Assembly (NCBI RefSeq): GCF_006345805.1
Contig: NC_043004.1
Location: 82,832,001 to 82,896,000, forward strand
From: Octopus sinensis
Lineage: Eukaryota
Reading direction: 5' to 3'
DNA: 64,000 bases
Positions 54,326 to 64,000 of this stretch are shown in pieces. How positions within the stretch are numbered: position 1 is the first letter of the stretch; every line of letters begins with the position of its first letter. The notes under the pieces were generated by a model. That model was not told where the DNA came from, made no database searches, and was given only the letters and a program-made list of their open reading frames with translations. A program made the translations under genes and the position numbers.

Positions 54326-54379
54326 CTAACTCCTTGTCTGATACGCCACTATGGAATAGGTGATGATGCTTCCAATGAG
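54326..54379 (-). CDS. GRL-F exon 4 (TM7b, LIGSIITYSIVAYQTRS*)
   Basis: atatattgcAG|CTC acceptor, TY-x5-Q motif, TAG at 54328-54326. Confidence 0.88.
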   Translation of the reverse strand, partial: LIGSIITYSIVAYQTRS

Positions 54380-55375
54380 CTGCAATATATAATATATAAC
54401 CGAGTATTAACAATGACTAATAATTGTGTATATATCGTAATTATATAAATGTGATACTATTTTTATAATGCTTTTATAGAAGTTAAGTTATTCACGTTTA
54501 ATTTAAACATTTATATACAGAACATTTATATATAGATGTATAAAATACCTTTTATACATCATATATTTTATCTGTTACTGAACTGTTGCCTTTCTTGAAA
54601 GACACCACGAAGGTTTTAGACGAATAACTCAAGTGCAATACTAATTTTCCAAGCCTAGTACTTATCGGAATGCTAGTCTTTGACCACCCGCAAATTTATG
54701 AGTACGTAGTAAGCCAATGCCGGTTGTTCAACGGCAAACAGCCAAAGACGTTCACACGTACATACCTACATACGCATACACAAGCACGCACACACACATA
54801 CAAACATATACGTATACGACGGGCTTCTTTCAGTTTCCGTCTACCAAATCTACTCAAAAGGCTTTGGGCGGCCCGAAGCTATAGTAATAGCCACTTGCCC
54901 AACGTGTCACGCAGTAGGGCTGTACCCGTAACCATGTGTTTGGTAAGCAAGCTATTTACCACATTGCCTCTCCAGCGCATATATATATATATATATGTAT
55001 ATATATATGTATATATATATATATATATATATATATATATGGATATATATATATATATATATATAAATAAATAAATAAATATATATATATATATATATAT
55101 ATATATATATACATACGGAGGGATTCCATATAGTTTCCAGCTATCAAACACATTCACAGGACAAAGTTTTTGAATTCTAAAGTACGTAATTCAAAAGCGA
55201 CTAGTTTAACCTCACCGCCATACATGTGTGTATTATGAGCTTTACAACATGATTTTTTATATTAAGGACTCAGAAAATAGACTATTTGAGTAATCGTATA
55301 TTCTGAAAGTGTTTGGAATGAAATTTTGAAAGAAATTTAGAAAGCATAATACTAAAGAGAGAGAGAGAGAGAGAG

Positions 55376-55809
55376 AGAGAGAGAGAGAGAGAGAGAGAGA
55401 GAGAGAGAGAGAGTGAGAGAGAGAGAGTGAAAGAGAGACTGAGAGATAGACAGAAAGAGGAGAGGTGAGAGATGAAGATCACATTTTAAATATGGTAAAC
55501 CACGGGAGAAACATTAGCAGATTTGTCAGCAGACTCCAGCACTGGAAAATTTTTTTCTATACAGTATTTTAATGAGAATAAGTAAACTGCAATATCACTT
55601 TACTTATTCTCATTAAAATACTGTATAGAAAAAAATTTTCCAGTGCTGGAGTCTGCTGACAAATCTGCTAATGCTTCTCCCGTGGTTTACCATATTTAAA
55701 ATGTGATCTTCATCTCTCACCTCTCCTCTTTCTGTCTATCTCTCAGTCTCTCTTTCACTCTCTCTCTCTCTCACTCTCTCTCTCTCTCTCTCTCCCTCTC
55801 TCTCTCTCT
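55376..55809. repeat. ~430-bp near-perfect palindrome (~210-bp arms, 12-bp spacer) in GRL-F intron 3
   Basis: Arms end ...gagaataagtaaa|ctgcaatatcac|tttacttattctc...; one substitution in the unique part; the outer ends are (GA)n/(TC)n. Confidence 0.9.
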
Positions 55810-56249
55810 GCAGTTTGATATTGCAGTTTGTCTATGGCATATGGACTAATTTCTAAACACATAATCAGGAGTTTTCAAAGATCTGCATCTGATTATTCGA
55901 TTGATATTGTTAGCACTATTCTATAACTCAGCTGTATTGGTTGCATCAGTTAACTCTCAACTTCGTTTTTCAATAATATTTTCGTAAAGTTATTTTGTAA
56001 CTTCAAAATTTATAAATATATCTATATGTATACGTGGATTTATGGCAATTATCATAATGACGAATGGAATTAGAACGACTTTGTAATTGGTTAGCATTGT
56101 CTCGGAAAGTCAGTACGTCATATACATGTATACATATATTCATATATGCATATACATATTTATCTGTATATGCATAGACACCTCCCCCCAGTCTAATTGT
56201 AAATTCAATAATGTAGATGAGATTTCTAGTCGTAAAAGAATTATTGATA

Positions 56250-61587: not shown

Positions 61588-62630
61588 AGGCCGTCACAAA
61601 GGTGAGGGAGACAGTCGTCAGAGACTCTCTTTGCTGACGACTGCGCCCTTAACGCAATCGATGAGCAGGAGATGCAACTCGGGATGGACAGGTTCTCATC
61701 AGCCTGTGACAACTTCGGTCTCACCATCAGTGTCAAGAAAACCGAAGTGATGTTTCAGCCAGCCCCCGGCAAACAATACCATGATCCTCAGATAAAGGTG
61801 AACGGACGGATCCTACGAGCGGTGGAAAACTTCACCTAACTGAGCAGCACTCTCTGCTGCAATGCCAACATAGATGCTGAAATCATCAACAGAATCTCCA
61901 AGGCAAGCAGCGCATTTGGGAGACTGCGAAAGAAAGTCTGGGAGCGGAGAGGAATCAGCCTCAACACCAAGCTGAAAGTCTACCGGGCAGTCGTGCTTAC
62001 CACCCTACTATACGGCTGCGAGACGTGGACTGCTTACCGAAGGCACGAGCGCCAGATAAACCACTTCCATCTCAGGTGTCTTCGGAACCTCCTTCACATC
62101 CGCTGGCAGGACAAAGTCCCAGACACGGAAGTTCTGAAGCAGGCAGATCTCCCTAGCACCATCACGATCATGCGCAAGGCCCAGCTGAGATGGGCAGGCC
62201 ACGTCTCCCGCATGTCCGACATTCGCATCCCAAAACAGCTCTTCTACGGTGAACTCAGCCAGGGCAAACGCAAAGTCGGAGGGCAAAAGAAGCGCTTCAA
62301 GGACAGTCTCAAAGTCTCTCTCACGGACTTCTCCATCGGCACAGAGACTTGGGAGACACTTGCTGCCGACCGCTCATCTTGGCGCAGCGCAATCATCACA
62401 GGAGCAAAGACAGCCGAGGAGAGACGGATTCAGTCAGCAGAACAGAAACGCCAGATGCGGAAAGCCAGAGCCACCTGCACCAATAGCACAGCCCCTACCC
62501 ACTTCTGCCCCACCTGTGGGAGGGGCTTTCTTGCCCGGATCGGCCTCACCAGCCACCTCCGGTCTCATAGCAGCAATTCCACCAAATGATGTCAATGGTC
62601 ATCTTCGAACCCGAAGGACGAACATTATTA
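61588..62630 (+). mobile_element. 3' fragment of an RTE (BovB-like) LINE
   Basis: LFADDCAL...GLTISVKKTEVM...LLYGCETW...QLRWAGHV...C..CGR.F..RIGL.SH.R.H; one in-frame stop near 61837. Confidence 0.88.
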
Positions 62631-63524
62631 TTAATAAATACTAGAAAATTAATTTAATGTAATGATTGTTGTTTGTTCCTTCTCGAGCCATGCCTGGCTC
62701 ATAAGGGCCGGTTTTTCAATTTGTGGGCGTATAGGTTCCCCACCTGGTCGGGACGCCGGTCCGTCGCAGGTGAGCTGCAAGATGTAGGAGAAAAGAGTAA
62801 GAGAAAGATGTGGCGGAAGAGTCAGCAGAAGTTCGCCATTACCTTCTTATTTTTTTACTGCCCACAAGGAGCCAAACATAGATGGGACAAACAAGGACAG
62901 ACAAAGAGATTAAGTCGATTACATCGACCCCAGTACGTACTGGTACTTAGTTTATCGACCTCGAAAGGATGAAAGGCAAAGTCGACCTGGGCGGAATTTG
63001 AACACAGAACGTAACGGCAGACGAAGTACCTATTTCTTTACTACCTACAAGGGGCTAAACACAGAGAGGACAAACAAGGACAGACAAACGGATTAAGTCG
63101 ATTACACCGACCCCAGTGCGTAGCTGGTACTTATTTAATCGACCCTGAAAGGATGAAAGGCAAAGTCGGCCTCGGCGGAATTTGAACTCAGAACGTAGCG
63201 GCAGACAAAATACCGCTAAGCATTTCGCCCGGCGTGCTAACGTTTCTGCCAGCTCGCCACCTTATTTCGCCATTACCTTCTGCCGGACCCGCATGGAGCC
63301 TTGGTGTTTCGCTCATCAACACACACATCGCCCGGTCTGAGATTCGAACCCGCGATCCCTCGACCAAGAGTCCGCTGCTCTAACCACTAGGCCACGTGCC
63401 TCCACTAATGTAACGATAGTGTGTCAAAAAGGAAACAGCACATAGGAATACCATAGTATTTTTCTAGGTTTCCAAGTATTATATAAGTCGGCGGGGGATG
63501 TATGTAGAATATTTATATATTTAC

Positions 63525-64000
63525 CTTTGAATTGATTTGTAATCCGTTGTATATTAATAGTATGCTATAAATTCCATTCAATGATCCGAAAATGATCTGA
63601 AGTGCGTAAATGGTTGGGGTTTGTACCTGCCTCGCAACTTCGTTTACTATAAGGCAACAAATAACCAATGAACTCACAACAGCGATAGCAGATGAATATT
63701 GAAGAACTGCATTCATATATTTTAATAAATCGCAGAGCTTGCCATGATTATTTATTATCTCAGTTAGATCTTCGTTGCAAGTAACTCTTGTATGATTTTC
63801 TTTATATTCGTTCAAAATATTTAGGAACATCTGCGTTATATGTTTAAATTCATTTGTTACAAGTAATAGGAATGTATGAAGACTTACATTCCAAGCTGAT
63901 TGAAGAAAAAAGACCCAGATATTTGTAATACAATTCAAAACTAACATAATATTATAACTGAAAGATTTGTGATTTTCAGTTTGTATAGGATATGTTAATA
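63525..64000 (-). CDS. GRL-F exon 1, 3' part (TM4-TM6); runs off the window end
   Basis: Frame open from 63998 (LTYPIQTENHK...) through NEFKHI and HGKLCDLLKYMNAVLQ to NGLQINSK; donor AAG|GTAAAT at 63525/63524. Confidence 0.88.

Follow-up and report, generated by a model that had tools for sequence, protein, structure and literature searches.

We consider it likely that the minus strand of positions 54326 to 64000 in the 64,000-nucleotide stretch of Octopus sinensis DNA analyzed here (contig NC_043004.1, positions 82,832,001 to 82,896,000; in the following the window) represents the 3' end of one large gustatory receptor-like (GRL) gene, in which about ten alternative first exons share a single tail of short exons. 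Judged by its sequence, this gene, termed GRL-F, is a member of the insect-type GRL family (7TMIC), and the locus is probably of the Gr28b/Gr39a type, in this case in a cephalopod. In the arrangement that we propose, exons 2 to 4 would be constitutive and would provide all isoforms with two parts of the seventh transmembrane helix (TM7), namely TM7a, which belongs to the intracellular anchor, and the pore-lining TM7b with its TY...Q motif. Upstream and mostly outside of the window, about ten long first exons would form an array in tandem, each of them specifying the protein from the N-terminus to TM6 and possessing a start codon of its own as well as a donor of the GTAAGT type in phase 0. The exon 1 that is visible in the window, here called exon 1a, would be the proximal member of the array. 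A single first exon per transcript, presumably driven by its own promoter, would be joined to exons 2 to 4, resulting in receptor subunits with different sensing (ligand-pocket) domains and the same pore and assembly module, and these may function as subunits of tetrameric ligand-gated cation channels in chemosensation. The placement of the ligand pocket in the variable part, of TM7a in the anchor and of TM7b at the pore follows structures of Orco and of gustatory receptors (GR) as far as they are cited in PMC7746228. A previous sequence-only reading had taken GRL-F for an independent paralogue of GRL-D, a gene on the plus strand of the window, and had expected the cluster to extend past position 64000. 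GRL-F is indeed distinct from GRL-D, being encoded on the opposite strand with ~25% amino acid identity in exon 1 and 26-55% in exons 2 to 4, but it is probably one, the proximal, isoform of a multi-isoform gene. Likewise, the locus does continue beyond the window edge, most likely with alternative first exons spliced onto window exons 2 to 4 and not with further independent genes.

Annotated isoforms point at a tail that is used by more than one first exon. In the first protein search, the sole close match was isoform X2 of O. bimaculoides LOC106880487, the last 70 residues of which are near-identical to the product of window exons 2 to 4 and the first exon of which is different. Two further isoforms came up in a profile search, O. 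sinensis LOC118764605 X1 (421 aa) and X2 (403 aa), which differ in their first exons and are 100% identical in their C-terminal 70 residues to the peptide of window exons 2 to 4. The first exons used are the orthologues of f and j in the O. sinensis isoforms X1 and X2 and are j and i in those of O. bimaculoides. The RefSeq isoforms X1 and X2 of both species feature four different first-exon positions and one 70-residue tail. The gene ranges given for LOC118764605 amount to 105 kb for X1 and 162 kb for X2. Both LOC118764605 and LOC106880487 are annotated as 'uncharacterized protein' in RefSeq, and by sequence the window gene can be equated with them, either as the same gene or as an orthologue.

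The array itself is apparent at the orthologous O. bimaculoides locus, LOC106880487 (CM046608.1:5557513-5641280, termed L001), which is collinear with the minus strand of the window at ~87% nucleotide identity. Nine long first exons are intact at this locus; they measure 345-362 codons, all lie on the strand of the gene and are 28-68% identical among themselves (Table 1). An in-frame donor is found at the homologous codon of the L001 first exons, including all intact ones, and reads GTAAGT in eight cases and GTAAGA and GTAAAT in one case each. Tail exons are present in one copy each, and a search with permissive thresholds between L001 positions 204 and 73768 did not reveal a second set (the gene before it ends with an exon at 157-204). 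Three intervals between first exons (8390-9268, 36402-40807 and 53295-55082) are gap-free and do not contain tail exons. When joined to the single tail, each intact first exon yields a protein of 415-432 aa that matches Pfam family 7tm_7 nearly end to end, with seven of the nine above the cut-off of 26.6 bits; the best-covering conceptual isoforms reach model positions 8-365 of 370. The orthologue of window exon 1a is the proximal L001 exon at 65804-66874, an intact exon of 357 codons (83% amino acid identity between the visible part and 66401-66874), and judged from this orthologue about 597 bp of exon 1a should lie outside the window. The distal first exon j carries an in-frame stop in O. 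bimaculoides (L001 7200-7790, ...DDINNLI*EYEDY...) and is open in O. sinensis X2 (...DDINHLLQEYEDY...), which reflects either the loss of one isoform specific to O. bimaculoides or a sequencing error.

Several points weigh against the interpretation as one gene with a shared tail. The window holds one first exon, and the array rests on the orthologous locus of another species and on isoform annotations; from the sequence, we infer that the species of the window has an array corresponding to the one in O. bimaculoides and that every first exon is transcribed and spliced. The AlphaFold model of O. sinensis LOC118764605 X1, derived from a seven-sequence alignment, is of low confidence (predicted local distance difference test score 55, predicted template modelling score 0.47), and a profile-based sequence search of the PDB gave no meaningful match. 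Furthermore, 20% of L001 consists of unresolved nucleotides (N), so that private tail exons might hide in some of the intervals, and the RefSeq isoforms are computational models, i.e. predictions. The latter two points also speak for GRL-F being a self-contained four-exon gene among independent paralogues, in which case the upstream open reading frames (ORFs) would be pseudogenes or genes in their own right, and the RefSeq predictions would have artificially chained orphan first exons to the closest tail. So does the position of exon 1a, which adjoins the tail (distance 3972 bp in the window, 447 bp in O. bimaculoides) and in the latter species gives a complete 7tm_7 protein of 427 aa together with it. 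Nevertheless, we judge independent genes to be very improbable. Nine first exons of ~350 codons stay open in a genome of ~33% GC and have kept an in-frame consensus donor. Without a tail, they cannot give a seven-helix receptor and would either be tail-less or need hidden exons, of which there is no trace in the three gap-free intervals. In addition, two independent species annotations provide like isoforms with different first exons, and the same pattern recurs in the neighbouring gene LOC118764607, the isoforms X2 and X4 of which have different first exons and one tail.

A further point on the negative side concerns exon 1a, which was found in no annotated isoform in searches with a lossy prefilter and the GTAAAT donor of which is weaker than the others (GTAAGT in eight of them). 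As the first search missed O. sinensis X1 and X2, which were later found, the lack of an annotated 1a isoform is weak evidence either way. It is conceivable that the shared-tail gene is real and that exon 1a is decaying or unused, with expression proceeding from the distal first exons only. Besides the missing isoform and the weaker donor, this would be in line with ~3.5 kb of transposon-derived DNA that was inserted into the intron of exon 1a in the lineage of the window, and with the presence of decayed copies in the array (j with its stop and the fragments at L001 23423 and 63294). We nonetheless consider a relic exon 1a unlikely. The 357-codon reading frame is intact in O. bimaculoides, all 158 codons visible in the window are open, and both species have retained the donor and the acceptor downstream of it. 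Moreover, dN/dS (the ratio of nonsynonymous to synonymous divergence) of exon 1a is 0.45 and significantly below 1 (binomial p=0.017), so that exon 1a is not neutral.

Selection was measured on orthologues, i.e. between the window and O. bimaculoides, because synonymous sites are saturated between GRL-D and GRL-F. There are 50 differences among the 474 nucleotides of exon 1a (dN 0.092, dS 0.204), compared with 5 among 210 in exons 2 to 4 (dN 0.013, dS 0.063), a difference in divergence with a Fisher p of 1e-4. The flanking intron is 88.6% identical (p=1e-5). Among the individual tail exons, exon 2 shows 95.7% nucleotide identity to O. bimaculoides and its peptide is the same in O. sinensis X1 and X2, exon 3 is 98.9% identical on the nucleotide and 100% on the amino acid level, and exon 4 has 100% amino acid identity to both O. 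bimaculoides and O. sinensis. The sequence-only reading had deduced purifying selection on the C-terminal anchor/TM7 region from the comparison with GRL-D, and the low dN of exons 2 to 4 bears this out. As exon 3 of GRL-D is just 77% identical between the two species, the very high conservation belongs to the tail of GRL-F and not to every GRL tail. It would fit exons 2 to 4 serving about ten N-terminal modules in as many isoforms.

In the window, all junctions of GRL-F are in phase 0, all splice sites are of the AG/GT type, and the three short exons are each preceded by a polypyrimidine-AG acceptor. Exon 1a ends in a phase-0 donor AAG|gtaaat, exon 2 is flanked by the acceptor ...catttag| and the donor AAG|gttcgt, exon 3 by ...actgcag| and ACG|gtaaaa, and the acceptor of exon 4 reads ...attgcag|. 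The lengths of 69 and 90 bp and the phase-0 boundaries that had been given for exons 2 and 3, the same as in GRL-D, are exact, as are their coordinates and peptides. By themselves, however, such sizes prove little, as a string of AG, a 69-nucleotide ORF and GT is expected by chance about once per kb and strand in this AT-rich sequence. The short exons are rather taken as real because exon 3 matches that of GRL-D within the window at an E-value of 7e-7 (15 of 27 amino acids identical), because the splice sites are kept in O. bimaculoides and because annotated proteins from two octopus species contain the three exon-encoded peptides in the same order as exons 2 to 4.

Table 1. Features of the GRL-F and GRL-D genes in the window and of the orthologous O. 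bimaculoides locus L001 (L001 coordinates refer to CM046608.1:5557513-5641280)
Feature	Position	Strand	Remarks
GRL-F exon 1 (exon 1a), partial	63525..64000	minus	158 codons (474 bp, 63998..63525), frame open to window edge
GRL-F intron 1	59553..63524	minus	3972 bp, phase 0, GT..AG boundaries
GRL-F exon 2	59552..59484	minus	69 bp, phase 0 at both ends, peptide AHQLVDHIYAMPLHDLSHEAIIK
GRL-F intron 2	57958..59483	minus	1526 bp, phase 0, microsatellite-rich
GRL-F exon 3	57957..57868	minus	90 bp, phase 0 at both ends, peptide LSFFLHRLTSEQIGISIGGCFVINPASVLT
GRL-F intron 3	54380..57867	minus	3488 bp, phase 0
GRL-F exon 4	54379..54326	minus	54 bp, 17 codons (51 coding bp) and TAG, peptide LIGSIITYSIVAYQTRS followed by stop
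GRL-D	19679..34987	plus	all introns phase 0
GRL-D exon 1	19679-20632	plus	
GRL-D exon 2	30733..30801	plus	69 bp, peptide VHSITESINFMQFQGIKQEAVSK
GRL-D exon 3	32770..32859	plus	90 bp
GRL-D exon 4	34928..34987	plus	60 bp
L001 intact first exons (starts)	65804, 55083, 52212, 40808, 35319, 28706, 20646, 13051, 9269	strand of the gene	
L001 decayed first exon j	7781		upstream in-frame stop
L001 decayed first-exon fragments	23423-23831 and 63294-63443		
L001 tail exon 2	67322-67390		one copy
L001 tail exon 3	70320-70409		one copy
L001 tail exon 4	73715-73768		one copy

Assignment of GRL-F to the GRL family is based on profiles, motif and gene structure. The partial conceptual protein of 228 aa, including the part encoded by exon 1a, matches 7tm_7 (PF08395) with 42.7 bits over model positions 151-365 of 370, and it also exceeds the cut-off for Trehalose_recp (24.3, cut-off 21). 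According to the alignment with the family model, the visible part of exon 1a would encode roughly TM4 to TM6. Proteins of the GR/GRL family carry the TM7 motif (T/S)Yhhhhh(Q/K/E)(F/L/M) near the C-terminus, which is diagnostic but not definitive (PMC7746228). Exon 4 of GRL-F encodes TYSIVAYQT at this place, and three of the four fixed positions agree, the last one being T and not F, L or M; the counterpart in GRL-D is TYIMVVIQT. In the ancestral GR/GRL gene as it has been described, a long exon 1 is followed by exon 2 with 69-72 bp, exon 3 with 90 bp and a last exon that is short, with phase 0 throughout (PMC13388675), and the three phase-0 introns at the 3' end are present throughout animal GRLs (PMC6175461, PMC7746228). 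The 69, 90 and 54 bp exons of GRL-F with their phase-0 AG/GT boundaries match this layout. Agreement in exon layout between GRL-D and GRL-F is therefore to be expected of any two family members (PMC13388675, PMC6175461, PMC7746228). The idea that the matching sizes validate both genes mutually thus holds as a check of family membership and of the gene model, but it does not indicate a constraint specific to GRL-D and GRL-F.

The low-confidence X1 model retrieved exclusively insect odorant receptor (OR), Orco or GR structures among its ten best PDB matches, with TM-scores of 0.28-0.52. When mapped onto this model, exon 2 (residues 352-374) would correspond to the last part of the extended TM6 helix, the loop after it and the beginning of TM7a, exon 3 to the rest of TM7a, a turn or loop and the start of TM7b, and exon 4 to the last helix, TM7b. 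To the extent that this predicted helix assignment holds, the designation of exons 2 to 4 as the anchor/TM7 region appears reasonable.

Two introns of GRL-F contain additional sequence. Intron 1 comprises ~3.5 kb (window 59840-63405) in excess of the O. bimaculoides intron of 447 bp. This part includes a tandem pair of ~184-nucleotide units reminiscent of short interspersed nuclear elements (SINEs) at 62848-63030 and 63031-63214, which are 87-89% alike, and an antisense ORF (61993-62589, plus strand) that appears to us to resemble the C-terminal tail of ORF2 from long interspersed nuclear elements (LINEs) and has no match in Pfam. A scan of window positions 54000-64000 for tRNA and Rfam families, aimed at the SINE-like inserts, gave no match. 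Intron 3 harbors a near-perfect palindrome at 55376-55809, with 214-nucleotide arms that are 98% complementary, 6 nucleotides apart and both include a (GA)n/(TC)n tract. Just ~78 bp are present at this place in O. bimaculoides, and the palindrome may represent a foldback element confined to one lineage or else an artefact of the assembly.

GRL-D has its relatives in O. sinensis LOC118764608 and LOC118764607 and O. bimaculoides LOC106880719, at 44-47% identity, and its exon 2 is supported by the identity of 16 of 23 residues, as counted by eye, to the matching ones of LOC118764608. Upstream of its exon 1, two decayed first exons of the GRL-D type are located on the plus strand (10321-10985 and 14565-15080) that lack tail exons of their own. 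One copy is truncated and frameshifted near 10870-10890, and the other contains an in-frame stop. By their sequence, both appear to be alternative first exons of the GRL-D locus that have become defunct. Intron 1 of GRL-D, ~10 kb in size, is explained in part by a retroelement on the minus strand (23737-27292) with long open ORFs, one of which (24546-26144) matches RVT_1 with 104 bits. A match resembling exon 4 at 28614..28567 on the minus strand was rejected as it possesses neither an AG acceptor nor the motif.

Downstream of the last GRL-F exon resides GRL-E (43742-44740, minus strand), an intact and unannotated ORF of 333 codons that resembles a first exon and has an ATG as well as a GTAAGT donor in phase 0. 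Its conservation extends to O. bimaculoides, with 85% amino acid identity and a dN/dS of 0.52. A tblastn search and a scan for AG-ORF-GT strings did not detect private tail exons for GRL-E before the convergent 3' end of GRL-D at 34987. An exhaustive HMMER search of 1.84 billion representative proteins returned two weak matches, both of them F-type first exons, and Pfam yielded no match for GRL-D and no 7tm_7 match for exon 1 of GRL-E. Most of the space between these two genes is taken up by a block of 150-177-nucleotide tandem repeats, among which (TA)n/(TG)n microsatellites are interspersed (35900-41800); in O. bimaculoides the interval measures ~1.7 kb. At the other end of the window, the plus strand contains the terminal exon of another GRL gene (1630-1683, MIGSFITYILLVIQTKQL), most of which lies upstream of the window. 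The encoded peptide is close, not identical, to the C-termini of O. sinensis LOC118764607 and LOC118764608.

The layout deduced for GRL-F is well established in insects, where GR and OR genes have tandem long first exons, covering the N-terminus to TM6, that are alternatively spliced to three shared short C-terminal exons separated by phase-0 introns (PMC6175461, PMC13388675). Annotators of insect GRs assume alternative splicing for such an arrangement, often with support from RNA-seq (PMC6175461, PMC13388675). The same kind of first-exon array is present in Drosophila Gr28b, Gr39a and Gr23a and in Blattella germanica Gr60a-m with its 13 isoforms, and the insect loci agree with GRL-F in exon sizes (69-72 and 90 bp) and in the TM7 motif in the last exon. 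The differences lie in the host, a cephalopod mollusc, and in the spread of about ten first exons over 66 kb in O. bimaculoides and up to 162 kb in O. sinensis. Sequence similarity to the insect GR genes is confined to the level of Pfam profiles, and splicing of GRL-F is predicted from gene sequence and isoform models. Compared with animal GRLs outside the arthropods, the T in the last position of the TM7 motif instead of F, L or M sets GRL-F apart. Alternative first exons that encode a variable recognition part and are combined with constant exons also occur in the clustered protocadherins and in UGT1A of vertebrates; these are unrelated families, for which mechanisms of promoter choice are known.

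Mollusca are one of the phyla from which GRLs have been recorded (Robertson 2015 and Saina et al. 2015, cited in PMC7746228). In the literature searched, which excludes the survey of Robertson 2015, we found no description of GR-like genes from cephalopods or of alternative first exons in GRLs from non-arthropods. We propose, as a tentative and rather doubtful possibility at this stage, that a cephalopod GRL gene gives rise to about ten receptor isoforms with mutually exclusive first exons and one pore/anchor module, in a layout that has not been described outside the arthropods. Equal exon sizes and phases would be ordinary on their own; what is added, and is of moderate interest, is a cephalopod locus of the Gr28b type with its constant tail in the window.

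Octopus chemosensation is now explained mainly by chemotactile receptors derived from nicotinic receptors. If the proposal is correct, octopuses would possess an unstudied repertoire of ionotropic chemoreceptors beside these receptors of the nicotinic type, and a clustered, multi-isoform GR-like family would provide a second set of candidate ionotropic chemoreceptors. For annotation, treating GRL-F as a single gene with a single product would undercount the repertoire about ten-fold at this locus, and upstream first exons counted as separate genes would lack a seventh helix. That a mollusc has exactly the 69/90-bp phase-0 layout is a data point for the antiquity of GR gene structure and may also bear on the antiquity of diversification by alternative first exons. 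Under the proposal, a design with many sensors and one pore would either stem from the protostome ancestor or have arisen convergently.

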